From Macrostomum lignano (taxonomy: Eukaryota), in NCBI GenBank assembly GCA_002269645.1, contig NIVC01001201.1:186001-250000 (forward strand): 64,000 bases of DNA. The letters run 5' to 3'. How positions within the stretch are numbered: position 1 is the first letter of the stretch; each line of letters opens with the position of its first letter. Position numbers and translations under genes: made by a program. This document shows positions 15,696-64,000 of the stretch, in pieces. A model generated the notes under the pieces. The model had not been told where the DNA came from and did no database searches. It worked only from the letters and a program-made list of their open reading frames with translations.

Positions 15696-17015
15696 TCAGA
15701 ACAGCGGCGTCGCGAAGACGCCTTCTGGCAGGGCTCTGAACTTCTTCTCCATGCACCGCCGGAACTCCTCCATGGTGATGGCGTCTGGGTCCGCCGGCTG
15801 AACCTCGTCGAACAGCTGCTCGAGCTTCTCCGCGGGAGCCTCAGGACGCACGGCCGGGCGCACCTGGTCCCCGCACAGGTCGAAGATTGCGGCGGAGACG
15901 GCCAGCGCGTCCTGCCGGGAGATCTGGCCGTCCGAGTCCACGTCGTACAGGCGGAACACCCACCGCAGGCGCTCGTCCGCCGGCCCCCGGGTCAGCATGG
16001 ACAGGGCGCAGACTAGCTCCTCGGTGGTGACCACTCCGTCCCTGTCGCAGTCCACCGTGTTGAAGACGTAGTGCGCAAACAGGGTGGGGTTGCCCATGGG
16101 GAACAGGTAGGCCATGGCGTCCGCGAACTGCCGGCGGCGCAGCAGGCCGCTGGGGCACTGCTGCTTGAATGCCCGGTAGATCGACTTCACCTCCTCCCGG
16201 CTGAAGCGGGTGCGCTGCACCATCTCGCTCAGCGGCGGCGGCCGGTACCTGTCTCCCAGCCGGCTGCTGCCGCCGAAATTGCCGAATCCGGCGCCGACGA
16301 TGCCGTCCTTGGCGCGACGCCGGACAAGGAACGGCCTGGCGAGGATCTCGAGGAGCCGCAGGCGGTAGCGCGCCCGCAGCCGGTCCAGCAGGCCGCAGCC
16401 GGTTGGCAGTTCCGCGTCCTCCGCCTGGCGCCGCTCGCGCCTCTGCTGCGGAGTCTCCACGTCGGCGAGCTGCTGCTGCAGGAGGCTGGCCAGCTCGTCC
16501 GGCAGGCGGTCCAGGGAGATCTGGTAGCCGCTGGAGCTCATCAGCGACACGATGGACGGCCGGCCGTGCGCCGCGCCCGGCACCGCGAGCCGGTGCTCCG
16601 AGCCGAGCTGCGAGCTGTGGCGCGACTCGCGGCGGGCGCTGGACGACCGACGGCTGGCGCTGCCGCCGCTTCCGTCGTCCAGGCGCTGCGGGCTGAGCAG
16701 CGGTTGCAGAGTCTGCACGCGGCGGGTTGAGTTCTCGCTGCTGCGGCGGGCCATCGGCTCCGATGACTCAGCCTGTTGCTGTTGCTGTTGCTGCTGGTGC
16801 TGCTGCTGCCTCTGCCGCAGCACTGTGCAGGAGCTGGACCGCCCCGCCACCAGCAGCGAGTAATGGGGCGTCGTCGGCTGCTGCTGCCGGTCCTTCGCAA
16901 TGGCCGCTGCGGACGAGGGCGTCGCAATGAGCGTCTCGGCGCTCTCGCCGGCCTCGGCGTCCGGCGAAGTCAGCGTGATGCGGATGTCTCTCTGCTGGCC
17001 GGTCATTTTGTTCAT
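15696..17015 (-). CDS. KCNIP: Kv channel-interacting protein (KChIP/calsenilin-like neuronal calcium sensor), single-exon ORF, 439 aa
   Basis: RYRPPPLSEMVQRTRFSREEVKSIYRAFKQQCPSG, FPMGNPTLFAHYVFNTVD, EF-hand loops DCDRDGVVTTEE and DVDSDGQISRQD, ERLRWVFRLYD are hallmark KChIP segments. Uninterrupted ORF with GC-rich codon usage. Confidence 0.9.
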   Translation of the reverse strand: MNKMTGQQRDIRITLTSPDAEAGESAETLIATPSSAAAIAKDRQQQPTTPHYSLLVAGRSSSCTVLRQRQQQHQQQQQQQQAESSEPMARRSSENSTRRVQTLQPLLSPQRLDDGSGGSASRRSSSARRESRHSSQLGSEHRLAVPGAAHGRPSIVSLMSSSGYQISLDRLPDELASLLQQQLADVETPQQRRERRQAEDAELPTGCGLLDRLRARYRLRLLEILARPFLVRRRAKDGIVGAGFGNFGGSSRLGDRYRPPPLSEMVQRTRFSREEVKSIYRAFKQQCPSGLLRRRQFADAMAYLFPMGNPTLFAHYVFNTVDCDRDGVVTTEELVCALSMLTRGPADERLRWVFRLYDVDSDGQISRQDALAVSAAIFDLCGDQVRPAVRPEAPAEKLEQLFDEVQPADPDAITMEEFRRCMEKKFRALPEGVFATPLF

Positions 17016-24488: not shown

Positions 24489-24639
24489 TACTATTGTCAC
24501 GCAACTGGCGAGAGGCATTGCTACCCATTCCGCCGATTCCCCTGAGCAGGGACACAAGCGCAAGGATGCGTACGCAATCATACAAGCACACACTCACACA
24601 GGAGTGTACAACGGCCCTGGCTTAAAACTTCTTAAAGCT

Positions 24640-25845
24640 TAAACTTAGCTGCTGGGGGTCCCGGGGGGGGCATTCCGCTAACCCCTGGCGACCCCGGGCA
24701 GCTGGTGCTGCGGTGTAGCGCAGGGAGATCCGGTGGTGACGGTGTCAACAGCGCGGTCCCCCTCCAGAGAGTCCAGGAGGTGAATGGTCGCTCGCCCGCG
24801 GTAGCCTTTAAGTAGCGGACGAGCTGGCAGAGATTCTCGGGCCTGAAAAATGTCGGTAAGGTCCGGGTGTTGGCCGAGGTAGGTGAGCATCGAGAACCCC
24901 ATTCACCTCTAGGTCAGTGTTGCAGATGAAGCCGGCGAAGGAGATGGCCGGTCTCACAATGGCAGTGTAAATCCACCAGAGGCGTTGGGGGTGAGGCCCC
25001 AGGTAGCGCCGAAAGCTCTGCGGATCTGCGCGAGAGTCGCAGGAGCTTTGCGGGCTTGGGCGTGTGGGGTCCAGCTCAACGTGGTGGAGGGTGACGCCCA
25101 GACATCTGGTTTGTTTCTCCATGGCAACGGGTTTGCCATAGAGGGAGAGCGGTTCGATCCTCAAATTTCGGCGGCTGGTGAACATGATAGCCACGGTTTT
25201 AGACTCAGAGAACCTGAGACCGCAGCTATGTGCCCTGCTCAACAATAAAATAAAACAAATCCAAATAAACACTCAAGCGCTTGGCACGGTGGATGAAGGC
25301 TTAGAGAAGGTCTCTGAGGACCGCGGGTGATGGTCCAGCCACAGTGGCGGTAACATCATCCGCATAGCCGACCTTCTGAACCGGGTCCGGATACGGGCTG
25401 CAGAGCAGCTTGTCCATGACTAAGTTCCAGAGGATCGGGTTGAGGACCCCACCTTGCAGTCCACCTTTCTGGACCTCCACAGAGCGGGAGTGTCCCAGGA
25501 GTTGCGAGATGGCAGTACGATGAGAGACCATGTACATGATCCAGCGAGTGAGGTGCTCGTGCGTGCCCCAGGATGATCAATGTCGAGGAAAAGTGAGAGC
25601 GCTCTAGCTTGTCGACAATGGCATGCAGCGCACTTTCAATGGAGCGTCCAGGTCGAAAGGAGTGCTGGTTGGGGGAGTGAGGGGAGTTCCTCAGCTCCAC
25701 GAGGAGGAGGCGCCAGAGCACCAGCCGTTCCATCAGATTGAGGGAGAAAGACTTCAGGCTGATGGGGCGGTAAGCTTTGGCAGAGTGATAGTCTCCCTAC
25801 CCTAGTTTGGGTATGAAGACTACCGTGGCCTCTTGCCAGGTTTTT
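24640..25845 (-). mobile_element. 5'-truncated, degenerate non-LTR retrotransposon RT fragment (R1/LOA-like)
   Basis: Frameshifted RT motifs QHSFRPGRSIESALHAIVDKLE, QGGVLNPILWNLVMDKLL, GYADD, LWWIYTAIVRP. Confidence 0.8.
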
Positions 25846-26456
25846 TTACTTTTAGCCTTGTGGAGGTTGCAGAGGAGCCGGGCCCTGAATTTAGTTATCG
25901 TGTACACTTTCTGTGCCTTGTGGGTGGGCCCTCAGAGACGTTAATTGCACTAGCAGAGCCGAGCGGAGATTCCAATTAAGCCTTAAATTAATGTGACTGC
26001 ACTTGGAATCGATGAGTTGCCTAATTATAGCGCGGCACCATCGCATCATCTTAAATGCTTCCTTGGTTGCAAGAGACTGCATGCCGGCCATAGAGGGTGA
26101 TCTCTGGCGCGAAGTGCTGGCGTGTTCGCAGAAGCATTCAGATAGCAAAACTGAGAAATTGAATTCCCAACTGCAGTGAAAGTGCTCATCAGTCAAGGCG
26201 GATGCCCTTCTGCCCAAGATGAGTCAGCATCTGCTCATAGGCAGGCTGAAAAGATTCCTGCCTTGCAGGGGACGGAAGTGCGACGGCGAGGCGGCGCATC
26301 TCACGACAGACGAAGACGGCGACACCAACGGTGGCGGCGTCGAGTCGGCGACGGAATCCTGGACAACCGGAACTCCCGGATCAACGCAGTGCCGGCCGCT
26401 GCCACAGCGCGCGCATCGGCGCCGGCGGAGGCTGCAGCGGAGCGTGGTCGGTGCAG

Positions 26457-31649: not shown

Positions 31650-34600
31650 AACAACAACAACAACAACAAAACTACAACAGCCCTTTTGGACAAGCCAAAT
31701 TAGCTTTGTTGCTGTCAAAAAGCGCGCGCAAGCGCAGAGTTGTGGGCAGAACAGCGAGTCCGCGAGGGTCAGGAATCTCTGCGTATCTTAGAAGCAGGTC
31801 GACGAAACGCAGACTTCTCGCCTGACCAAGCCGCCGCGGCCCTTGAAGGGATAGCAGCAGCACGTCTTGAAGCGGCTCAGGGCAGTACTGCTCTGCCCGG
31901 ATGACGTGGCCGGCCAGCTGTAGGCGTCGGATGCGCAACAGCTGGCTGGGTCAGGAGAGCTGGGCCCGTCGGTATAACTCGTCATTGCTGGTCGTGGTGG
32001 TGGCTGTCGGCGAGTAGTGGACACCAAAGGCGGCTCTCAGGAGTCTAGCGTGAGCGGCCTCGAGTTGCCGCTCCTGCGTGCCGTTCAGTGTCCACGTTTC
32101 AGCGTTGTAAAGGAGGACGGTTTCAATGACGGCCTGGAACAGCCGCCCTCTCAGCCGATCTGGCAGCGCAGGGCTCTGCAGGACAGTCCGCACGGTGCAA
32201 ATTGCGCCCCAGGCAAGCGCCCTGCGCCGTGCCATGTCCTCCGTGATGCTTGGCACCAGACCGCCGAGGTAGACGAACTCTTTGCAGCGGGGCAGCAACG
32301 CCACCTGCCCGTTCTTGCAGCGGCAGTAGATCTCAGCTGGGAGGTCCGTCGGCACGGTCAGCACCATCGTCTTTTTGGTATTCACGGACAGTCCGATCGC
32401 AGCGGCCGCCGCCGTCAGCTGGTCTAGCAGGCGTTGAGCTCCTTCAGCTGTGCTAGACAGCAGCGTTAGATCGTCCGCGTACGCTAGGACGGAGAGTCGC
32501 TTCTCGGGGTGCCGCCTGCTTGTTCTGCGGCTGAGCAAGAATCCTTTGGAGTCGTCAGGGAGGCCAGTGCGCAGTACCCAGTCCAGGACCAGGACGAACA
32601 GAAAAGGAGCCAAGGTGTCCCCTTGGAGAACGCCAGAAGACGTGTCAAAGAAGTCGGAAAGGCCATCCGGTGTCACAACTGCCCCCCTAGTTTCCTGGTA
32701 CAGAGCTAACACAGCCGTCACCAGCTGCTCGGGTACGTGATACGCGCGCAGGATGTTCGCGATGACCCGCCTCGACACCGAGTCAAAGGCCTTCAGGAAG
32801 TCTACGAAGATGCAAATGATGGTTGACTGGTGGATACGGGCCTCTTCTAGAATTCGACGCAGAGCGAGAATTTGGGTCACGGTGCCTCTGCCTGGCCGGA
32901 ATCCATTTCACTGGCTGCAGCCGTGACAGCAGAACTCTGTAAATAGCTTAGATGTGCAGGACATTAGCGAAATCCCGCGATGTTCTTCGACCTTGACGGA
33001 ACCTGGTTTCTTTGGGATCCCGACGATATGCGCAGTCCGCCACTCAGCAGAGGCGGGGCCCCCAGCTAGCACGTAGTTCATCACTCGTGTGACTTCCAGC
33101 GTGACTTGCGGGAGGCGCAGCACCTCGACAGGCACGTCGTCTGGTCCAGTAGCCTTGTTGCCTGGCGTCTTCTTTGCAAGTTGGAGCACCTCGTCGATGG
33201 TGATGGGGCTGATGTTAAAAAGGACCTCTCTTCTTGCAGTGCAACCTCCGCCGTGGGCAATGACATGTCCCTTTGCGGCATCGGAGGTGCGTCGACGATG
33301 CCAGACAAGAAAGTCCGCAGTTCGTTTCGCCTCTTTTCGGGGTGTCACTCGCCAGTTTCAGAACGTTGGGTTTCTTGCGGCTTGTCAGCTGATTGACGAC
33401 CGACCAGACGGCATGCGGTTTCTTGTCGGGACCGGCGTCTGTGATCTCCTGAATAACAACGGTTTCTACCGCAGTGCGTAAAAATGTCTCCGCTAGAGTC
33501 TCCTCTCCTTTCTCCGCAGGCTGTCCGCTCCTCCACAGTCTCTCCACTGTCATCCGGGCCTGCCGCAGCACTTCGTCGTTCTGCCACACTGGCCGACTCT
33601 TTGCTGCTGGCTTCACCAGCGGTAACGTTTTGGTAGCGGCGGCTTGGATGGCAGCGCTGATGTCCGGGTACTCGGCTGGGGTTTTTGTGCCCGGCCGTCC
33701 TTCCAGCGCCTCGGCCAATGCCAGACAGAAGCGAACACTTGTAAACCGGGTCGCGTAGGGCACGGAAGTAGCGCTTAGGCTGTTTTTGGTGGTCTATGGA
33801 TCCCTATAGCGCAGGTCGCAGTAGAGCAGCCTGTGGTCTAATCGCACTTCCAGCGGAGCCACCGTTTCGCTGTTGGTCACTCGTCGTCGCTCTCGTCGGC
33901 GAAGCAGCACGTGGTCGAGCTGTGCAAGTCTTTTCCTATCAAATTTTTCACACACGTGACCGTTTGCCAATCGGCTATTGGCCGTTTGCAAACGTTGCCA
34001 ATCTGTGAAGCGGCTTCCTGAACATCGTGTTTACTGAGACCAGGTTGTGGCGGTCCCATGAAATCCACTTAGAGCGTTATATATATAATAGTATTGTTGT
34101 TTTCGCGTGCGGTTACATAGCGGGTGCGCTCGGATTTTCGCATGGCAGCGTTGAGGTCTCCGGGGGTACCAGTACAGTGTCACGTTGAGTGGTCTTCTCC
34201 AGCTGCGCTGACAGGAACTCCAGGACTGCCGGCGGTGCTCTACCGCTAGATGCGCAGTCTTGGGGCGCATACAAGTATAGGCACGGAAGAGCCGCATACG
34301 CGTGTGGAATCGAATGTCGACGCGCAAAAGCCGCGGTGACAGGCTCTTACAGCGCGCACTTTTCTGAAGCCTTGGCCCCGTTAGAAGGCCAATTCGTCCC
34401 CGGTCTTTCGAGTCTGCTACATGTTAGCTGATGTGTAGGAGCCAACCGCTGCCTAAGTGCTCCTGGTGAAGCCCAGGCTCGACCGTTAAGGAGAACTCTT
34501 GCAGCATAATTATATCAAGTTGTAGATTGCCTGCAAGCTGGGCCAAAAGATAGATGTTGTCTCCACTTTGCTCGCAGCGTTTGGCAGTTCCAAATGCAAT

Positions 34601-40822: not shown

Positions 40823-50375
<9,553 letters not shown>

Positions 50376-52627
50376 TGTTTTATTTGGGCTGGGAATCCTT
50401 GGATAAATTAATTCACTTAGTTGTATTGCATAATAAGTTTTATCACAGCGCTAATTTTGTTATTGCTTTATTGCATTAATTATCCCGAGTTATCATATAT
50501 ACCAGAATATTAATAGCTTAGTACTGCTGATAATGGATCAAAAATTCAAAATTGCACCATAATTGTAGCGCTTTAGTGAAACAAAGGCCCGGTCAGCAAA
50601 CTCGCAAACTAGGCATGTGTTTATTTATAAATCATGCAACTTTGTAAACAAAACAGATTTCCCTGCTAAATTTACACGGATCTGTCTGGCATTTCCTTAG
50701 TGAGGCGGCTAATTAATTTACTAAAAAATGTGTGCAATGCGTGCACGGTTTTCATTCCTGATGTAGGCTAAGATTGCGTGTCCCCATTGCACAGTTTCTA
50801 TTGCTTAAAAGTGATCAATCTGTCAATTCTCCGTGGACTTGTACATGCTTTCAATTTAACTGTTTGCCGTTGGAAAGTGCAAAATAAAAGTGCGTATTGC
50901 ATAAGTTATTTTTCATGAAAAACCAGCCTGTGGCGGTGCAGTGGCCCGCTATGAACCGCGAGAAAATCAAAATGGCTTATTGGTTTATTCGTTTCAATCG
51001 TCTTTCTCCTACACAAGAAAGTAAAAGTGATTAATTAATGCCCGTGTGGATCGAAATTGTCGAGGGGCAATTATAATTTCATCGAAAAGCTACTTAAATT
51101 AAGCGGCCACTTTCAGTTCCCGTTTTCCGAGCGCACAGACTAATAATACCTTGGTTATAATAGCGAGCCGCACGTCTTTCAAAACACGTCTATGAGAACC
51201 AATATTGATAAAAATAAATTCCCCATTATTCGCTTAGTTAATGTCTACTCAAAGTACTATAAAAATGACTGTGTATTTGAAAGACGTTTGAATCGTTAAT
51301 AACCAATACGAAAATGGACTTCGTAGCAAGCAAAATAATAGTTCGGCCAAATTATTTTGTTTGGTCAACGCTATTTCGCTTGCTGCTGTCTGCCAGAATT
51401 CTCGCTGCGCTTCGTGGCGGACACTGAATTGGTTCGCTGCAACAATAAATGACGGCAATTAAAGTGGCGTGTGTACATGTAGCTCAAGATGATAATCAGC
51501 CTTGCACGCAGATGAAACTTGGACTGGAAGTATACTCCGTTGTAGTCCATGAGCACTCTTCTCTGCTAGACAAGATACGAAGTTTTAGAATTAAAAACAG
51601 CATTAGCTGATGGTGCATGAAAATGTGCGCATCTTAGCTTGTAGGGCTAAAATTTTATTTGCAGCGACCCACGCCAAAGGCGGTTGTAATTTAAGAAAGC
51701 ACAAAGTACATTCCGGCGGCAGAGCAGCTGCACTTATGATGAGTAGATAGAGTACAGATGTATAATATATATATTGCAGTTGTACTAATTCCTAAAGAAT
51801 TCATTCCCTTCCAACTTTTAATCGCTTCTAGGTCTTCATCTTTAAGGATACTGGCGAGTTGCTTCCGGTAAGTGATAATTTTGTTTAATTAAGCTCTTGT
51901 TTTTGTTTCTATTTGTCCAGAGTGTGTCCCCTGTCCGACTTAGAGTTCGCTATTTCCAAGCTCATTGCAGCCAAACGATAGTTGATTTTCAATATGGCTT
52001 AAAACTTGAGGCCGGATGCCAAATGGCACCATATTTAAAAAATGAAAAGCCTTTTGATAAGCTCGTGCTACCTCAGTCTCAGTGGTTTTTATTTACTCTT
52101 TCTGTTTCTGAACTGCGATTTTGCGTTATAATAAAGCGCCGATGACTATAGCTAGCTAGAAGTGTCTTTTATTCGAATTCTAATGCACTTATAGCTATCT
52201 CCAAGATACCAGTAGAAATCATCTTAGCTCAACTTACGAAGTGTCTCCCAGTCGCAGCACATAGACGATTGGCTTGGTGTTGGGAATTCAATAATAAATA
52301 TAAAACAGCGGCCGAGCCTTGGCGAGAGAGAATCTGCACTCTGCCTTGCTCATCCCCACTGGGACTTGCCAGCCATAGACATCTCTTTGTACAGTTGGCT
52401 CGGAAGGCAACTCGGGCCCATTCCGCTGCTCAGCCCAGAGGGGAAGGCTTTTTCGGCTTACGGCTTTGCATTAGAGCCGCTCGCATTTTGACCTTAACAA
52501 AAGACAACCCGAGGCCCAAGGTGCAGTTAGAGGCAACGAGAAGCGTCCACGAGCCACATCTAGCTAAACTTGCGTCGGATTTGGTCAACCACAGCTGCAG
52601 CACCTATATACCTAAGCAGACTGAACT

Positions 52628-54132
52628 ATGCGCGAGATTGTGCACATGCAGGCTGGCCAGTGTGGCAATCAAATTGGAGCAAAGGTAAGCCTTATTTATT
52701 CTCCATTATTTTAACACCATGGTCGCGTTTCTAGTGAGATCGGACTCCCAATTTCCCTTACTGTGTCCTCCTTGGTCTTTTTAGTTTTGGGAGGTGATCT
52801 CAGATGAGCATGGCATCGACCCCACTGGCACCTACCATGGCGATTCGGACCTGCAACTCGAGCGAATATCGGTTTATTACAACGAAGCTACCGGCGGCAA
52901 ATACGTGCCGAGAGCTGTGCTCATCGACCTGGAGCCCGGCACCATGGAGAGCGTTCGGGCCAGCTCCTTTGGCATGCTGTTCCAGCCCGACAATCTGGTC
53001 TTTGGCAAGAGCGGCGCCGGCAACAACTGGGCCAAGGGCTACTACACAGAGGGCGCCGAGATCATCGACAAAGTCATGGATGTTATCCGCAAAGAGTGCG
53101 AAGGCTGCGACTGCCTGCAGGGCTTCCAGCTGACCCACTCGCTTGGCGGCGGCACCGGCAGCGGCATGGGATCTCTGCTGCTGAGCAAAATTCGCGAGGA
53201 ATATCCAGACAGAATCATCACCTCCTTCTCTGTGGTTCCTTCACCAAAGGTAAGCTGAGCTGTTTTTTCTAAACCAAGTTTGTGCTTTGCCTCTAACCAC
53301 GCCACCGAATCTATTCCAGGTGTCGGACACGGTGGTTGAGCCCTACAACTGCATGCTGTCTCTGCACCAGCTGGTTGAGAACACCGACGAAACCTTCTGC
53401 ATCGACAACGAGGCCCTGTATTACATCAGCTTCCACACCTTGAAGCTGGCCACCCCCAGCTACAGCGATCTGAACCATCTGGTCAGCGCGGCCATGTCCG
53501 GCGTCACCACCTGTGTCCGCTTTCCCGGCCAGCTGAATGCTGACCTGCGCAAGCTGGCAGTGAACATGGTGCCGTTTCCTCGCCTGCACTTCTTCATGCC
53601 CGGCTTCGCCCCGCTGACCGCTCGCGGCAGCAGTTCCTACAGGCAGGTGAATGTCTCCGAGCTCACCCTGCAGATGTTCGACGCCAAGAACATGATGGCC
53701 GCCTGCGACCCCAAGCACGGCCGCTACCTCACTGTGGCTGCCATCTTCCGCGGCCGAATGTCCACCAAAGAGGTCGACGAGCAGATGCTCAACCTGCAGA
53801 ACAAGAACAGCTCGTACTTTGTTGAATGGATACCCAACAATGTGAAGACCGCAGTGTGCGACATCCCGCCTAGAGGACTCAAGATGTCGGTGACCTTCAT
53901 CGGCAACTCCACCTCAATCCAGGAGCTGTTCAAGCGAGTCTCCGAGCAGTTCAGCGCCATGTTTAAACGGAAAGCATTCTTGCACTGGTACACCAACGAA
54001 GGCATGGACGATCACGAGTTCATGGAGGCCGAGTCCAACGTCAACGATCTGGTGTCCGAGCTGCAGCAGTACCAGGACGCCACCGCCGACGACGAGGGCG
54101 AGTACGAAGAAGAAGAAGAGGAGTTGGAATGA
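52628..54132 (+). CDS. TUBB: Beta-tubulin (divergent isotype, 444 aa); exons 52628-52684, 52785-53249, 53320-54132
   Basis: [46 protein letters not shown] and an acidic tail. Two GT-AG phase-0 introns (after codons 19 and 174); intact frame. Confidence 0.97.
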
Positions 54133-55097
54133 CACTGACGGCCACCGAGCCCCCCTGCCCCCTACTGCAGTCCCCTGTGCCTCGCTGCACTTTTTTTGCG
54201 TTCTCCTACTCGTAACCTCTTTACCAAAGCGCATTGCTGGCCTGGATCAGTGCCCAACGGCCAAGCAGTCTTCACTCCGACAATCGGAGATACCGCACTG
54301 CCCGAACCTCCCCCACCTCTGATGCGCAGCATATCGCTTCAATCTGTCCCTCTCGCATTGTTTATCGCGTCACAATGTCCTGGCAACCACAATTCCCTAT
54401 TTAGTGTCATTGCGCTATTTATTTACATTGGCATAACCCGTACAGTAACCTGCTTGTACGGACGGATTTTGTAGGGCTCAAATTGGTTTTAAACACGCAA
54501 AACACACGTCACATTTCTGTACACCAGCGCAGCCGACAGCGAGCGGTTGAACACAGGTAGACAACTGCACTCGGCATCCACTTAGCATTTTAGTTTACCT
54601 TGACTCATTATTTATTACTGTTGTACAGTCGTACTCGAATACATATAACGCTTGATTTTAGTGTCAGTTATGCACTGCATATTTCTGTCTTTGACTTCTG
54701 TTTTGTCTTTATCGATGCAACGGGAAAAACAGCATGAAAAATTCTCACAAACCCGGGTCTGCTAAATCAGCTAGAAAAGAATATGTTAAAGCTCATCACG
54801 AATGATAAAGCTTGGAAAAATTTCTGCTCCCAGCTTCTTCCTCTTCGGCGAGAATTCTTCAAACAGTTACGCTTGATCTCCAGTTGTGCTGGTTGCAAAG
54901 AAAACGCGGTTTCTTCATTCCTCTTCCACCGTTGCAGTTTCGCAAGAGTTTGTGGTTATTTCTTTTCTTGTGAACTGCTCCATCTGGTGTCTGTTTTACT
55001 CCCAGGCTCCTCAGATGCGGCTTGTGCATGTGGGGGGGGGGCTTACCCGCGATTCTTACTCTGTTTATTCCGCCCATTGCTAACCGTCTCCGAGCAG

Positions 55098-58060
55098 ATC
55101 TGGCACCCGCTCGAGCTGAAGGAGAATGACCACTACGTGGACCCCGTCGCCAGCCAGCTGTACTGCTTGGACCAGCCGTTGCGGGACGATGAAATGCCCC
55201 CCGCTGTGGCGCCGCGCGAGCGAAGCGGGACGGCCGCTGGCGGCGGCTTCCGACTGCAGGAGCCACCGCCCGGTTGGCGACGGCGCGGCGGCGTGACCAA
55301 AGCCTCTGTGCGCGGCGCTGGCGGGAGTCGGTCCGCTCGAGCCGCCGCTGCTGCTGCCGCCGCAGCCAGCGGATCAGGCGGCGTCCTGCAACCGCTGCGC
55401 CTGAAAGACGAACTTCCGCCAGCCCTGGCAGCCGCCGCGGAATCCGCCGGCTCCAGCAGTCACTACAGGCACCCTAGCGGCAAACTGCAGATTCCCAAAT
55501 CTCTGTTCCACCGGGATAGCCTGTCCCTGTCCTACGCCAAGCCGAAGCGGCCGCTGGTGCAGCGCCCAGGCGTTGGCGGCGTTGTCGGCCCAGGCGGCGT
55601 TGGTGGCCTGGGCGTCGGTCCGGGGCATCAGCAGATGCTGGCCAGGCCCGGGTACAGCAACTATGACAACCCGAGCGGCACCGACTTCGATCTGCAGCCA
55701 AAGTGGAGCGCTCACGAGCAGCTGGGCATCATCCAGAGCATCGAGCGCTTCCAGGAGATGTACCTGGAGACGGCCCTGTCCTACGAGCCGCGGTTCACCA
55801 CCCAGATTCCAAACTGGGATTTGGCCGAGTACTGCGTCAACAATTTCGTTCGATCCCGCTGCTACCGCGGCAAGTTTCACATTCACGCCCACATCGACCA
55901 ACTGGCCAGCAAGGTCATGGACGATGGCACGGCGGCTGCCGCAGCTGCCGCCGCCGCTTCCGGATCGGGCAACGATGCCGCCTCATCGCAGCAGCTCCCA
56001 GCCTCTGCCGACGGTTCAACCAGCTCTTCTTCCACAGCTGCCGGAGGCGCGCAGGCCGCGGCGGCCGCTGCTGTGGCCGCAGCAAAGAAGGCCGCCCGCT
56101 GCCGCCTGAAGCGGGGAATCCTGCGGTCCCGGCTGAGCGCAGGCGAGTCGGCGACCCAGCTGAACTACTCGGTGGACGCCAAGGGCCAGGCCATGCGTAG
56201 CCTCCTACGCTGCGGCCTGAGCACCGGCTCCGGTGGCGGCGGCGGCGGTCACAGCCGCAAAGGCGGCCCCGCCATCGGACTGAACCGGCCGCGACCGACT
56301 TCCACGGGCTCCTCCGCCTCATCCGGCGTGACGCTATTCAAGAACACCCAGCACCTGCAGCTGCTGCAGGAAGAGGGCATCAAGCTGGACACCATCGTGA
56401 GTCCCGCGCACATCATCCGCCTGGCTGAGGAGCGGCGCAAAACCCAGCCGGTCTCTACTGCCATCACCGCTGACGTTGGCGAGCAACAGCAGCAGCAGCC
56501 ACAGCAGCAGCAGCATTCTCTGCATCAACAGCAGCTGCAGAAACTGCGAATGTCCAATCAGGGCGGCCTGACGTCAATCGGGCCGGGAGGCTCGCAGTCG
56601 CATGTGAGTTGGGGATCATTATAAGAGTGCAGATAATCACGCCAGCTCTTAGGCTGCTCAACAATCTATAGTTAAAGCATTGGGGGTTTATTTAGCTGGC
56701 ATTTGCCTCCAGCTGCAGGTGTCCACCTCGGCCGGGGCGGCCGCCAAGTCCAGCATCCTGGTGCCCGGCACCGCCAGCTCCGTCCTCGGCTTCCAGCGCA
56801 GCGGCGGCGGGCCTTTCCGGGCCGCTAGTGCGGCCGCTGCTGCCGCCGCCGCAGCAGCCTCAACGACATCCGGCGGGAAGCCGCCGCCGCCGACGGCTCC
56901 GGCCAGGATTCTCACCTCTGGCTTCGGCGGCCCCTCGAGCTCGTCCAGCAGCGGCGCCAGCAGCGGCAGCACGCTGCTCCGCCCGCCACCGCAGCCAATG
57001 CCGCTGCCGCAGTCCCAGGCAACTCTGCCCGTGTCGCTGCAGGCGCCTCAGCAGCCGATTTCAATCACTTCAACGCAGCACCAGCCTGCTGGCCTGGCCG
57101 CGGCCACCGGCATCGGCCTTGGCGGGCTGCGGCGTCCCGGCGGCGCCTACGCATTTCCAGCCTCGGCTGGCGGAGTCGGCCGGCTGAACCCGAACCAGCC
57201 TGCCGCCTTCGTGCGCACCCTGGGTGAGTTCAGGGGACCGTCGGGATTTTAAATTGCTGCATCTTAGCTGTGGGCTGTCGGTAGCTCCAACCCGTTGAAA
57301 AACTAAAAAGTGGTTGCTAAAAACTCTCAAGTGACTCAAGCGACTCTGTTGTGACTCTGGTGACTTTTTAACGACTCAAACGCGTCTAGTGCGACGGAGA
57401 GGCGGCTGTTGCGTCACAAGCGCATCACGTGAATTTTAGGATCGTAAAAGAGTCCTCAGTGACTCTACAGCTACTCCAGCACGCCTCAGATACGACGTTT
57501 TACCGTCGCGTCAGAGTCACTTGCGTCGCCCCATTGTCTTTCATTGTCATGTCACAATCGACCCCATCCCGCTCCCGGCCAGGTCCGCGGTCCAGCATTC
57601 TCGGAGCTGCCGGCGGAGCGACCTCGGTCCCGACCACCCTGGTCACCACCTTGCCGCGGGCCCGCCTGCAGGGCCCTCGGCAGCCGCCGCCGCAGGGTCA
57701 GCGCAGCAGCAGCCGTCGGGTTCCGCCGGTGTCGCTCCCGCCAGCCTGTACAGCGGCGGCGGTGGCGGCGGCGGCCGTCACGTGATCCTGCAGGGCACCA
57801 CCACCGTCACGGTTCGCCAGATTCCCGATTTGAGGTCGGCCGACTCGGCCAGCCAGCAGCCAATCATCATCTCGGCCGCCAAGCCGACCCCGGCCGCCAG
57901 CATCAGCCTCATCCCGCCCGGTTCCGCCGCCGCTGCCGCCGCCTCAGCCGCCTCCTCAGCCGCCAGCGTCTATCCGTCATTCACTGTCTCGGCCAGCGCG
58001 CATTCCTCGGTGGCGACTCTGCCGCCAGTGGATTTGGACAGCATTGACGATGGCAACTAG
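55098..58060 (+). CDS. dom: Alternative 3' exons of domino (p400/DOM-A-like C-terminus with SANT-like domain); exons 55098-56603, 56713 (or 56719)-57223, 57583-58060, joined from donor 49481
   Basis: IWHPLELKENDHYVDPVASQLYC...EMPP resembles the EP400 segment MPLWTPPTPPQDDSDIY; IPKSLFHR resembles PPRSLFDR; PKWSAHEQLGIIQ...QIPNWDLAEYCVN...CYRG resembles the EP400 SANT domain. Acceptor CAG 55095-55097 with CTAAC branch site at 55080 is phase 0, like donor 49481. No credible own start. Probable extra 1-nt deletion near 57675. Confidence 0.82.
57328..57523. repeat. Short intronic element bounded by a 10-bp inverted repeat CAAGTGACTC / GAGTCACTTG, with clustered G(T/C)GACTC motifs
   Basis: Inverted termini and internal motif repeats are visible; no TSD confirmed. 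Confidence 0.4.
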
Positions 58061-58064
58061 CGAA

Positions 58065-59478
58065 AAGGAATGCCGTCTCTGTCTCTTCCCCTGACCTTCG
58101 ATGGGATGCCGCCACCACCTCTCCCCCCTGACCTTCGATGGCATGCCGCCACCACCTCTCCCCCCCTGACCTTCGATGGGATGCCGCCACCACCTCTCCC
58201 CCCCCCTGACCTTCGATGGGATGCCGCCACCACCTCTCCCCCCCCTGACCTTCGATGGCATGCCGCCACCACCTCTCCCCCCCTGACCTTCGATGGCATG
58301 CCGCCACCACCTCTCCCCTGACCTTCGATGGCATGCTGCTACCGCCTCTCCCCCCTGACCTTCGATGGGATGCCGCCACCACCTCTCCCCCCTGACCTTC
58401 GATGGGATGCCGCTACCACCTCTCCCCTCTGACCTTCGATGGGATGCCGCTACCACCTCTTCCCCCTGACCTTCGATGGGATGCCGCCACCGCCTCTCCC
58501 CTCTGACCTTCGATGGGATGCTGTCCCTGTCTCTTCCCCTGACCTTCGATGGGATGCCGCCCCTGTCTCTTCCCCTGACCTTCGATGGGATGCCGCCACC
58601 GCCTCTCCCCCCTGACCTTCGATGGGATGCTGTCCCTGTCTCTTCCCCTGACCTTCGATGGGATGCCGCCACCGCCTCTCCCCCCTGACCTTCGATGGGA
58701 TGCTGTCCCTGTCTCTTCCCCTGACCTTCGATGGCATGCCGCCACCACCTCTCCCCCCCTGACCTTCGAACGCTTCGATGGGATGCCGCCACCACCTCTC
58801 CCCCCCCCCTGACCTTCGATGGGATGCCGCCACCACCTCTCCCCCCCTGACCTTCGATGGCATGCCGCCACCACCTCTCCCCCCCTGACCTTCGAACGCT
58901 TCGATGGGATGCCGCCACCACCTCTCCCCTGACCTTCGATGGCATGCTGCCACCGCCTCTCCCCCCTGACCTTCGATGGGATGCCGCCACCACCTCTCCC
59001 CCCTGACCTTCGATGGGATGCCGCTACCACCTCTCCCCTCTGACCTTCGATGGCATGCCGCTACCACCTCTTCCCCCTGACCTTCGATGGGATGCCGCCA
59101 CCGCCTCTCCCCCCTGACCTTCGATGGGATGCTGTCCCTGTCTCTTCCCCTGACCTTCGATGGGATGCCGCCCCTGTCTCTTCCCCTGACCTTCGATGGG
59201 ATGCCGCTACCACCTCTCCCCTCTGACCTTCGATGGGATGCCGCCACCGCCTCTCCCCCCTGACCTTCGATGGGATGCTGTCCCTGTCTCTTCCCCTGAC
59301 CTTCGATGGGATGCCGCTACCACCTCTCCCCTCTGACCTTCGATGGGATGCCGCCACCGCCTCTCCCCCCTGACCTTCGATGGGATGCCGTCCCTGTCTC
59401 TTCCCCTGACCTTCGATGGGATGCCGCCCCTGTCTCTTCCCCTGACCTTCGATGGGATGCCGCCACCGCCTCTCCTGC
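58065..59478. repeat. 35-38-bp minisatellite (CCCCTGACCTTCGATGGGATGCCGCCACCACCTCT)n right after the long-isoform domino stop
   Basis: About 38 copies with alternating variants; source of the many overlapping minus-strand false ORFs. Confidence 0.95.
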
Positions 59479-60254
59479 CGCACAGAGATTGGCTGGTTTC
59501 TAAAACCCGGGCCTTTGTACAAAATCAAAGCCAATCAATGAGTGGCATTGTGTATTTACAATGTGCTGGTGGGAGTTTTGTTCATATTTAATACAGCTTT
59601 GCATTGCGTTGTGTTCGTCTGTTGACGCGTTTTGTACTCACTTGGCTTCGACATTAATCCAAGTTGCTGCGAGTATTTAAGGTAAATAACAAATTCATAC
59701 TTACTTCACTGCTCGCTGCATAAGTTTCACTTGCTGTTGTTGAATTTGGCATCCGCCTGTAATATTGACTGCGTCCAACATTTTCCATCGCTGTTCCTCT
59801 CGAATGTTTGGCTCATTAGGCTCGAAATTGCTCTTTAATTGAATGTTATTCTTGCGTCTCCCTGTGCTTGTGTCCGTTGCTTATTGGAATGGTTAATCAT
59901 TAAATTGAATTGATTATGCTAATTAGCTTTTTGCGGCTGTTATTTGCAGGCCAATAAATAGTGTGTTAAATTTTTTTAATCGGCAGCTCAATTAAAATAG
60001 ACTTGACTTTGTTTTGTTTTGCCTTTTGCTTTTGGCTGCTACCCATTTATTCTCCCTGCATCTCACTGCTCTCATCCCGATACAGGGAACGAGAGAAGCA
60101 ATTAATAACATTGTAAAAGCTCGATCCACAGCGGCTGCAAACTCAATAAACAATTATTCAATAGCAGATACATCTCGACATGGTTGCCCTAGCAACCATG
60201 GACTTTCCAGCTTCCCAAACAATCAAATGCCCATCCAGCAACCAGGTGCCCCTA

Positions 60255-60620
60255 GCTTCCCTTAGCAAACAAACTCTTCTAGCTTCCCTAGCAATCAGAT
60301 GCTCCTATAGCTTCTCTAGCAACCAGATGTCCCTCTAGCTTCCCTAGCAACCAGATGTCCCTCTAGCTTCCCTAGCAACCAGATGTGAGATGTCCCTCTA
60401 GCTTCCCTAGCAACCAGGCGCCCCTCTCTAGCTTCCCTAGTAACCGGGCACCCCTCTCTAGCTTCCCTAGCAACCAGATGCCCCTCTAGCTTCCCTAGTA
60501 ACCAGGCACCCCTCTCTAGCTTCCCTAGTAACCAGGCGCCCCTCTCTAGCTTCCCTAGTAACCAGGCACCCCTCTCTAGCTTCCCTAGTAACCAGGCGCC
60601 CCTCTCTAGCTTCCCTAGCA
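60255..60620. repeat. About 30-bp minisatellite (CTAGCTTCCCTAGTAACCAGGCGCCCCTCT)n
   Basis: About 12 degenerate-to-perfect copies. Confidence 0.92.
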
Positions 60621-61600: not shown

Positions 61601-63432
61601 ATGGGTCTTGGCTGGCACCGCCTGGCAACTCTGCTGCTTGCGGCCTTCTGGACCCCGCCTGTGCCCGCCAACGCGGCGATCTCCGACTTCGACGCCTGCT
61701 TGGCCAGCTGCTTTCGGATTCAAAGGTTTTGTGCAGCTCTTATGAGCTGGCTTTGTGACTGTGCAATCCTGTCATAGAATGAGTTGCTCCTACCGCAGTG
61801 CCCCATATAGCTGCATCCTATAACTCGTAGTATCTTTGGATTTTATTCGGCTTTCTAAGACGGATTAGCAAACCAGCGCCTAACTGCGAGCCAGAGAGGA
61901 GAAACGATAGAGGAGACTAGAGAGGAGAGATTAGAAAAAAGAGGAAAGATGTGAGAAGGGAGAGTAGATTAGAGAGGAGAGCAGAGAAGAGACGAACCAC
62001 AGAACCACAGTATTCTGTGAGACGAACCTTGAATTGTTATTCTGAAGTTTGTACTGGGGTTTGCCGACACCTGTTCTAAGACATCGATATAATGTGTACA
62101 GAATGTCAGCAGGATGTGCACTCAATGCCCCATTCGGTACCCTGCCAGACACATTGGTGACTTCTGCCCGCCGACTGCGCCCGCCGGGCGCAGTGTCTGC
62201 CGCTGCCAGTCCCGGCTGCCGCGCCTGCGTCACCAGCTGCCGACCTGCCCGGAGCTTCCCGTCCAGCAGCCGGCCGTTCCGGGCTGCTGCCGTTTCAACG
62301 CCGGCCGCGACCGCTTCGCCGTCCGCTGCCCACCGACGGTCGCCGTCGGGGCCGCCTTCGCCTGCTGGTTGGCGCCGCTGCCCGGCTTGAAGCCGCCGGC
62401 CTTCGGCTGCCTCGACGGCGCCGCGGCTGTGGAAGCCCGCCTGCTGACCAGCTGGGAGGTGCGACCGGATGAGCGGCAGCCCGCTGCCGTGGCCAACATC
62501 AGCTCAGGTGCTTTTCTGGCACCTCACCTGACGCTGGGTTTAGTGCCTTCTCCCAGTTCTTATGTTGGCGCCCTTTAGCACCTGTTTTGGCGCCTCCCAT
62601 GACATTTTGGTACCACCCCTGACATTTTGGCACCGCCCTTGACATTTTGGCACCGCCCTTGATATTTTGGCACCTCCCCTGACATCTTGGCGCCTCTTCT
62701 GACATTTTGGTTACCACCCCTGACATTTTGGCACCTCCCCTGACATCTTGGCGCCTCCCCTGACATTTTCCCGAAGCCTGACACCTGCTTTAACTGCCTG
62801 CTTTTATGTCTGTTTTGGCGCCTTCCATTCTGTCCCTTTTTTGAGTCATCTGACAAGAAGGCATTCAGGACTTACTGTTCTGTTCTGTCCTGTTTTGGCG
62901 ACCACCCTGACCCCTGTTTTTTCCCCGAATTCATTGGTTAAGGATCGCAGCAACGCAGCATTGACTCGCCAACAACGTTCGCCGTCCCGGAGCTCGCCGC
63001 GCCCAGTCAGGGCCGGCACAGCATCGGCGGCCGCCTGCGGCGGGGCGGCCGCGACTGCGGCAGAGCTGCAGTGCCGGCCACCGTGACTGCCTACCTGCCG
63101 CTGACTGGCCTGACAGTTCGGCTGCTGGCGCCGAACCGCGGTGAGTTTTGCATCCCACTGGCAATTGTAAATGGATTTTGATTTTGCGCTGAAAACTTCT
63201 GCTCTTCTCCCCATCCTCCGTCACAGAAGCCGACCGTCCAGCCACCTCCACAGTCCTCGTAGAGCCCCAGCCTCAGGACGCACTGCTGACCGACTTTGTC
63301 GTCCGTGTCGACGGCTTCCGGCTGAGCGGCGTCAAGCCACGTCGGCCGCTGCCGCTGCCGCTGTCGCTGAACTTCGGCTGGCACCGGGTTACCGCCGTTG
63401 CCTCCAATCCCGTCTCCATGGCAACCGCTAAC
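61601..63432 (+). CDS. 5' part of a secreted or membrane protein with a Cys-rich N-terminus and PKD-like repeats (polycystin-1-like); exons 61601-61725, 62149-62507, 62943-63140, 63227-63432, continuing beyond the window
   Basis: Signal-peptide-like MGLGWHRLATLLLAAFWTPPVPANA; phase-consistent junctions (2, 1, 1, 0); GWHRVTAVASNPVSMATAN matches the PKD-repeat G-x-Y/H-x-V-x-V-x-ASN-x-VS signature. The exon 3 acceptor (AAG 62940-62942) is less certain. Confidence 0.62.
62598..62768. repeat. 20-bp degenerate minisatellite (GACATTTTGGCACCGCCCTT)n, intronic
   Basis: About 8 copies between donor 62508 and the next exon. Confidence 0.88.
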
Positions 63433-63469: not shown

Positions 63470-64000
63470 GGGGCAAGCGAGGGAAAAGATCTAGAGATTG
63501 GGAGGGTAAGGGGAGAAGATCTAGAGATTGGGAGGGTAAGGGGAAAAGATCTAGAGATTGGGAGGGTGAGGGGAAAATATCTAGAGATTGGGAGGGTGAG
63601 GGGAAAATATCTAGAGATTGGGAGGGTAAGGGGAGAAGATCTAGAGATTGGGAGGGTGAGGGGAGAAGATCTAGAGATTGGGAGGGTGAGGGGAGAAGAT
63701 CTAGAGATTGGGAGGGTAAGGGGAAAATATCTAGAGATTGGGATGGTGAGGGGAAAATATCTAGAGATTGGGAGGGTGAGGGGAAAATATCTAGAGATTG
63801 GGAGGGTAAGGGGAAAAGATCTAGAGATTGGGAGGGTGAGGGGAGAAGATCTAGAGATTGGGAGGGTGAGGGGAAAATATCTAGAGATTGGGAGGGTAAG
63901 GGGAGAAGATCTAGAGATTGGGAGGGTAAGGGGAAAATATCTAGAGATTGGGAGGGTGAGGGGAGAAGATCTAGAGATTGGGAGGGTAAGGGGAGAAGAT
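63470..64000. repeat. 30-bp G-rich minisatellite (GGGAAAAGATCTAGAGATTGGGAGGGTAAG)n, intronic, runs off the window
   Basis: About 18 copies after donor GTATGA at 63433. Confidence 0.96.

Follow-up and report, generated by a model that had tools for sequence, protein, structure and literature searches.

How does a complete beta-tubulin gene come to lie, on the same strand, between what look like two alternative 3′ ends of a chromatin-remodeller gene, and does its presence bear on which end is used? The question arises from 64,000 nt of the flatworm Macrostomum lignano (assembly GCA_002269645.1, contig NIVC01001201.1, positions 186,001–250,000 of the forward strand). We refer to this whole stretch as the window and give all positions in its coordinates. 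A preliminary description had placed the tubulin gene inside an intron (49482–55097) of a gene of the domino type and proposed that tubulin transcription may interfere with the long domino isoform. Along the + strand, the locus consists of SRCAP-like exons that both isoforms would share, an open tail ending in a stop codon, the tubulin gene, and distal exons of SANT-like and low-complexity character. We put the probability at roughly 55% that the tubulin is nested, in the sense orientation, in an intron that would be removed only from the long domino isoform.

On this reading, the tubulin would lie in a 5.6-kb interval parting two alternative 3′ ends of a single domino-type gene. At the proximal end, translation continuing past an unused donor at 49481 as far as the stop at 50375 would give a tail like those of SRCAP and DOM-B. 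At the distal end, p400/DOM-A-like exons from 55098 would encode a SANT-like segment. The tubulin itself would most likely have a promoter of its own, as its paralogues must have, and its position would be a neutral consequence of a duplicate gene having landed in a large intron.

The tubulin gene and its paralogues

The beta-tubulin gene at 52628–54132 on the + strand is built of three exons, and the earlier claim of an intact three-exon gene with its own ATG holds to the exact coordinate (here and below, a slash marks a splice boundary):

52628–52684, + strand: tubulin exon 1, with the ATG and codons 1–19; donor AAG/GTAAGC; intron position common to the paralogues L001–L004
52785–53249, + strand: tubulin exon 2, codons 20–174 including GGGTGSG; phase 0 at both boundaries
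53320–54132, + strand: tubulin exon 3, codons 175–444, with the acidic tail and a TGA stop

The spliced open reading frame (ORF) of 1335 nt encodes 444 aa and has no internal stop. Both introns (100 and 70 nt) are GT-AG introns in phase 0, and both donors read AAG/GTAAGC. The protein matches the Pfam families PF00091 (Tubulin; 1.6e-63, residues 3–210) and PF03953 (Tubulin_C; 3.8e-43, residues 261–382), begins with MREI (residues 1–4), carries GGGTGSG at position 140 and ends in an acidic tail. It is exactly identical to GenBank PAA70872.1 (BOX15_Mlig025496g1, Mlig025496.g1), which is annotated as 'hypothetical protein'. No AATAAA or ATTAAA is found between the tubulin stop and 55097.

In a protein search, the closest matches are M. 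lignano beta-tubulins (94–97% identity), followed by canonical beta-tubulins of animals at 83–85% and the divergent tubulins specific to Drosophila at 68%. Together with the 100% identity of 42628–64000 to NIVC01001201.1, these matches exclude a Drosophila origin of the DNA. The window tubulin belongs to a divergent Macrostomum-specific clade, with at least four paralogue groups in M. lignano that are 93–97% identical among themselves. With the canonical metazoan beta-tubulins the window protein shares the full Tubulin and Tubulin_C domains, MREI, GGGTGSG, the acidic tail and an intron after codon 19. Its clade nevertheless stands apart: it is 82–83% identical to canonical forms, whereas these are mutually 87–94% identical across phyla. 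Twenty-three substitutions are fixed in the clade at positions where the six canonical beta-tubulins compared are invariant, among them Q94K, H105Y, D209Y, M406H and Y422L.

At the DNA level, we compared the window gene with two paralogue groups, L001/L002 and L003/L004 (the latter on NIVC01000420.1 and NIVC01001075.1), each a pair of 99–100% identity. The exons of the window gene are 84–88% identical to those of both groups at the nucleotide level, while introns and flanks cannot be aligned. Synonymous divergence (dS) is 0.7–0.9, and its ratio to nonsynonymous divergence, dN/dS, is 0.03–0.05 against both groups. These values mark the window tubulin as an old, strongly constrained duplicate. 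Since its reading frame is intact and under purifying selection, the gene is functional and not a pseudogene.

The first tubulin intron is common to all paralogue groups, and the second is common to the window gene and L001. A retrogene origin is ruled out because both introns are also present in L001. The paralogue Mlig011676 (L003/L004) lacks intron 2, which follows codon 174 in the window gene and in Mlig024742, a difference that points to intron loss or gain inside the tubulin clade. Upstream, the tubulins of L001–L004 adjoin HIT/DcpS or arrestin genes on the opposite strand, and none of them lies in a domino locus. These tubulins must have promoters of their own because their upstream neighbours are on the opposite strand. 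Their neighbourhoods are uninformative on the age of the nesting.

The host gene and its apparent frame breaks

On the same strand as the tubulin, a gene beginning at about 40823 encodes an HSA domain and a split SNF2 ATPase (Pfam HSA and SNF2-rel_dom). Its exons were located approximately by tblastn with domino and SRCAP homologues:

40823–49481, + strand: host part that both isoforms would share
40823–41163, 41386–41806 and 41884–42024, + strand: first host exons, the second with HSA
42305–43903 and 43993–44599, + strand: exons of ATPase lobe 1, the lobe itself running from 42305 to about 44430
46639–47044 and 47246–47803, + strand: exons after lobe 1, the second with lobe 2
48103–48345, 48582–48754 and 49263–49481, + strand: conserved segments of post-ATPase exons

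The two ATPase lobes are parted by a long insertion, from the end of lobe 1 at about 44430 to the start of lobe 2 at about 47250, with conserved exons between. Against the Protein Data Bank (PDB), lobe 2 scores best with human SRCAP (148 bits), followed by yeast SWR1 (121) and EP400 (82). By these scores, the host ATPase is of the SWR1/SRCAP/domino type and closest to SRCAP, which bears out the preliminary description of a domino-type host on the tubulin strand. A protein search with the SNF2 ORF returned only matches shorter than about 930 aa, with no full-length flatworm domino among them.

The public host protein has 1332 aa and ends at 47657. Our exon model falls 24 aa short, at 1308 aa, a gap that neither one nor two plausible changes to the model can close. 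Three apparent frame breaks interrupt the conserved coding sequence:

47640–47644, + strand: frame break 1, apparent 1-nt deletion in a T5 run, after SRF in a conserved motif
48116–48118, + strand: frame break 2, apparent 1-nt deletion in an A3 run, after RLISE
about 48630–48640, + strand: frame break 3, apparent 1-nt deletion, after AAEKAKK

The stop of the public 1332-aa model arises from the first break: the public host protein is truncated at an apparent frameshift. The silence of the annotation 3′ of 47657 is thus uninformative, since the model stops at the frameshift and the use of one coding sequence per gene would leave the rest untranslated.

The breaks also raise the possibility that the host copy is defective—a decaying duplicate with real frameshifts, in which only the tubulin functions—or that the juxtaposition of tubulin and domino is itself an assembly error. 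Three breaks fall inside 1 kb of highly conserved coding sequence, and Pilon polishing of the assembly, for which Illumina and RNA-seq reads were used, should have left few errors. M. lignano is moreover a hidden polyploid (PMC8629364) with many duplicated loci, of which the L001/L002 and L003/L004 pairs are examples. Against decay, two or more of the breaks are losses from short homopolymers (T5 and A3), typical of long-read errors; the residues flanking the breaks are 94–98% identical to homologues of other phyla, unlike the product of neutral decay; and the frame is open elsewhere in the host gene as well as in the tubulin and the first distal exon. A misjoin is opposed by the lack of Ns in the window, and we found no repeats flanking the tubulin, hence no sign of misjoin or of transposon capture. 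Homopolymer context and conserved flanks give the first two breaks, at the least, the look of long-read errors left in the assembly, which all three probably are, and we consider a defective or misassembled host improbable.

The proximal end and the candidate intron

The nested reading depends on what follows the last conserved host exon, which starts at 49263. This exon holds a candidate donor, CAG/GTACGG at 49481/49482, the top-scoring GT of its ORF. Two alternative continuations can be drawn from it:

49482–50375, + strand: read-through tail of 298 more codons, Q/P/S-rich, with the stop TAA at 50373–50375
49482–55097, + strand: candidate alternative intron of 5,616 nt; donor CAG/GTACGG, acceptor gagcag/ATC, both phase 0; encloses the tubulin

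The tail is open to its stop, and its codon signal is weaker than that of the other exons. After 50375 the sequence becomes AT-rich, with the first AATAAA at 50883. We regard 49482–50375 as a credible candidate for a short C-terminus of the SRCAP/DOM-B kind. The candidate acceptor at 55097/55098, which reads ...ccgtctccgagcag/, was judged good. Because both sites are in phase 0, and because any other phase-0 donor in the tail exon would still enclose the tubulin, nesting is the most economical reading of the locus, although the 49481>55098 splice itself remains a prediction. An Rfam scan of the window gave no matches, and hence no intronic snoRNA or similar RNA.

The candidate distal exons

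Distal to the tubulin, a stop-free stretch of 628 codons extends from 54738 to 56621. Before 55098 it carries no coding signal (codon score −0.55; GC content at third codon positions, GC3, 0.49). From 55098 onward the coding signal is clear, with GC3 of 0.78 and the correct frame best in every sub-block. The onset of coding signal thus falls at the candidate acceptor. The candidate exons of the long isoform are as follows:

55098–56603, + strand: candidate exon A1, 502 codons, ending CAT/GTGAGT; SANT-like segment at 55689–55868
56719–57223, + strand: candidate exon A2, acceptor ctgcag/GTG, donor CTGG/GTGAGT; low-complexity, A/S/P/Q-rich
57471–58060, + strand: candidate last coding region A3, stop 58058–58060; best frame shifts near 57690–57780, so that its junctions are provisional

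For a sub-query of 101 residues, the SANT region of human EP400 is one of only three PDB matches, a weak one (phmmer, E 0.41), aligned in the pattern DLQPKW..E....IQ.....PNWDL....VN..SR.YR. A Smith–Waterman comparison with the EP400 SANT region, targeted in that a p400-like end was the prior hypothesis, scores 74, while 20,000 shuffles give 21.5 ± 4.0 with a maximum of 50 (p < 5e-5). In all six frames of the window, tblastn with the EP400 segment finds 55689–55868 at E 1.6e-5, and the runner-up has E > 1. The SANT-like identity of 55689–55868 is likely, not established. About 170 residues 3′ of this segment, the peptide TIVSPAH (56391–56411) is identical to a stretch in the human EP400 SANT region; with E of about 1, its recurrence is probably due to chance.

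Several results weigh against nesting. The donor, with GTACG, does not conform to GT[G/A]AG, the consensus of the species (PMC8629364), and the three apparent frameshifts raise some doubt as to whether the host copy is intact. No SANT domain is found by Pfam in the distal ORFs. When 1.84 billion representative proteins (~15 billion sequences) were searched exhaustively by HMMER with the distal ORF, none contained it, and no p400 or domino protein matched significantly. The spliced peptide spanning 49481>55098 has no match in the PDB. An AlphaFold model of the SANT-like segment reaches a pLDDT (predicted local distance difference test) of 40 and is unusable. The public annotation has no gene in the 10 kb 3′ of the tubulin. 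Of the p400-like end proposed in the preliminary description, the specific match to the EP400 SANT region therefore stands, whereas domain and whole-protein searches do not bear it out. Likewise, the proposed intron 49482–55097 agrees with the phase-0 sites and with the coding signal that starts at 55098; the annotation, which ends the host at 47657, is silent on it. The remaining results of searches with the distal ORF are negative or marginal: the exhaustive search returned a single marginal and unrelated match (P0242), weakly CSRNP_N-like; a word-indexed protein search was swamped by low complexity and gave no match; and neither terminal part of the ORF, N or C, had a relevant match in the PDB.

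These distal exons need not belong to the host gene at all. The locus could instead hold three tandem genes without nesting: domino would end at 50375, the tubulin would be its neighbour, and 55098–58060 would be a separate gene or unexpressed remnant exons. The spliced-leader (SL) trans-splicing of M. lignano, which the preliminary description left unconsidered, opens this and other readings. About 30% of the genes are trans-spliced to a 35-nt leader ending ...TTGCATG, at acceptors of the form YTNCAG (PMC8629364). Were 55098 such an acceptor, the terminal ATG of the leader would be in frame with the phase-0 exon. A true gene end would account for the 298-codon tail, its stop and the change of composition after 50375; the donor at 49482 is off consensus; and the annotation treats the tubulin as an independent gene with nothing 3′ of it. 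On the other side, the acceptor gagcag does not fit YTNCAG, and transcriptome-based annotation should have picked up an independent gene whose ORF is about 1000 aa long, whereas no such protein is in the collection. It would also be a remarkable coincidence for a segment of the p400 SANT type to lie just 3′ of the window's one SWR1-type ATPase and on its strand. To our knowledge, the metazoan p400/DOM-A proteins include no stand-alone SANT/Q-rich form that lacks HSA. On balance we consider three tandem genes unlikely, while giving this arrangement serious weight.

Upstream of the tubulin ATG

Three short motifs stand out 5′ of the tubulin ATG:

52299–52305, + strand: TATAAAA, 329 nt 5′ of the ATG, directly following AATAAA at 52293–52298; not kept in the paralogues
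52373–52380, + strand: 8-mer CCATAGAC, candidate shared tubulin promoter element
52595–52600, + strand: CTGCAG, 27 nt before the ATG, fitting the trans-splice acceptor motif; not kept in the paralogues

The TATAAAA that the preliminary description reported near 52300 is present, but as a promoter mark it is ambiguous because AATAAA directly abuts it, and it is absent from the paralogues; the motif may belong either to the promoter or to a poly(A) signal region. All three tubulin groups carry the 8-mer CCATAGAC 176–296 nt 5′ of their start codons (L001 at 9705; L003 at 9742 and 9825). It may be a shared tubulin promoter motif, as its recurrence weakly hints. Its significance is marginal, with a shuffle p of ~0.06 and seven copies in the window where about two are expected, and this too counts against the reading that we prefer.

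CTGCAG admits a different account, in which the tubulin would have no promoter of its own. It would be transcribed with domino in the manner of an operon, and freed by 3′ end formation of the short isoform and SL trans-splicing after CTGCAG, at 52601. Tubulin output would then rise and fall with the short isoform, and a transcript from which the 5.6-kb intron is removed could yield no tubulin. The two genes share a strand, as neighbours in SL operons of M. lignano do; the acceptor motif stands before the tubulin ATG, and the leader that would be joined there ends in ATG. The AATAAA at 52293 lies about 300 nt 5′ of the acceptor, inside the 1-kb operon spacing used for this species, and another M. 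lignano beta-tubulin is listed as trans-spliced. Operons account for 15% of M. lignano genes under a repeat-adjusted spacing criterion of 1 kb, with a mode of about 100 nt (PMC8629364). The gap from the domino stop to the tubulin ATG is, by contrast, 2,253 nt. The tubulin paralogues, moreover, adjoin opposite-strand genes and hence have their own promoters, the acceptor motif is not kept among them, and the ATG of the leader would open an upstream ORF of five codons. Operon-like expression of the tubulin is very improbable in our estimation.

Does the tubulin influence the choice of the host 3′ end?

The preliminary description went beyond geometry: the promoter, splice sites and 3′ end of the nested tubulin would hamper production of long domino, and chimeric transcripts might arise. 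Cells that express the tubulin would, in that case, make mainly short domino. The geometry is as described, and a 49481>52785 junction would indeed be in frame, tubulin intron 1 being also in phase 0. This compatibility of phase is an arithmetical fact and not evidence for domino–tubulin chimeras. A precedent exists in human sense-nested genes, which disturb host RNA processing: upstream of the nested gene, they cause introns to be retained, intronic sequence to be exonised and transcripts to be polyadenylated prematurely (PMC3192792). Against interference, a pair of short and long isoforms is found in Drosophila, and probably in other arthropods (PMC7239659), with no nested tubulin reported there; the tubulin therefore seems not to be needed for the isoform choice. 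We find nothing in the sequence that argues for coupling between tubulin and isoform, so a regulatory role is unsupported speculation, and interference of this kind appears highly improbable.

A stronger form of coupling would make one pre-mRNA the subject of a three-way choice. Either the 5.6-kb intron would be removed, giving p400-like Domino, or the transcript would be cleaved after the SRCAP-like tail; in the latter branch, the downstream RNA would be SL trans-spliced, or separately initiated, to give the lineage-specific beta-tubulin. Taken jointly, these steps are again highly improbable. Were they real, the amount of tubulin made in particular cell types would be linked mechanistically to whether the remodeller takes its SWR1 or its NuA4 form. 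The supplements of M. lignano studies that we searched for expression data hold no entries for Mlig025496, EP400 or SRCAP.

Comparison with known nested genes and with Drosophila domino

With simple nesting of an uncoupled tubulin as the preferred reading, the locus can be set beside known systems. About 63% of human nested genes are antisense to their hosts, in agreement with the earlier statement that nested genes are more often antisense, and of those that code for protein, about one third lie in tandem with the host (PMC3192792). The same-strand orientation is thus a minority case, not a rare one. Like the human sense-nested genes (Kaer et al. 2011, PMC3192792), the tubulin would be a complete gene with its own exons, in sense orientation in a host intron. 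The candidate short M. lignano isoform also formally resembles the intron retention or exon extension with upstream polyadenylation seen in human hosts. Unlike in the human cases, the short domino form probably predates the tubulin insertion. So read, the locus is another case of a known arrangement: a sense-oriented nested gene in an alternative-3′-end intron. A nested duplicate of a multigene-family member is by itself ordinary genome architecture.

The more interesting by-product is a hint of the DOM-A/DOM-B design outside arthropods. In Drosophila, the splice isoforms DOM-A and DOM-B of dom share their N-terminal part and differ only at the C-terminus (PMC7239659). The long DOM-A carries a SANT domain and a Q-rich region and is p400/NuA4-like, while the short DOM-B has an unstructured tail and is SRCAP/SWR1-like (PMC7239659). 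This two-C-termini design has been suggested for other arthropods (PMC7239659), and the literature extends it no further. The M. lignano gene is likewise of the SWR1 type with HSA and a split ATPase, and the window shows the same order of shared exons, open tail, and SANT-like and Q/A-rich exons. It differs in that the flatworm isoforms are deduced from DNA alone and the SANT match is weak. The M. lignano locus also has a complete tubulin between the two ends.

If the long isoform is real, the use of one gene for two C-termini, SWR1-like and NuA4/p400-like, would extend to a flatworm. The two-isoform domino design would then be old in protostomes, not an arthropod invention. A real long isoform would also make the locus a clean natural test of the influence of a sense-nested gene on host 3′ end choice. 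M. lignano is tractable by transgenesis, and public tracks of SL reads and poly(A) reads exist.

Other features of the window

Beyond the candidate long-isoform exons, the 3′ part of the window is rich in minisatellites:

58088–59475: minisatellite, 37-nt unit × 37, starting about 30 nt after the last candidate long-isoform stop
60237–60620: minisatellite, 30-nt unit × 13
62585–62769: minisatellite, 20-nt unit × 9
63481–64000: minisatellite, 30-nt unit × 17 or more

The first of these creates long spurious ORFs on both strands. On the 5′ side, an ORF on the − strand (31951–32880) matches the reverse transcriptase domain RVT_1 at 2.3e-19, marking a retroelement about 8 kb 5′ of the host gene. 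A second − strand ORF (15696–17015, 439 aa) contains EF-hand pairs and a weak match to the N-terminal domain of USP32, and probably represents one exon of a gene for a USP32-like or calcium-binding protein. Short interspersed repeats at 24493–24888 and 25939–26012 recur with 75–90% identity in unrelated M. lignano contigs (L001, L002 and L004).

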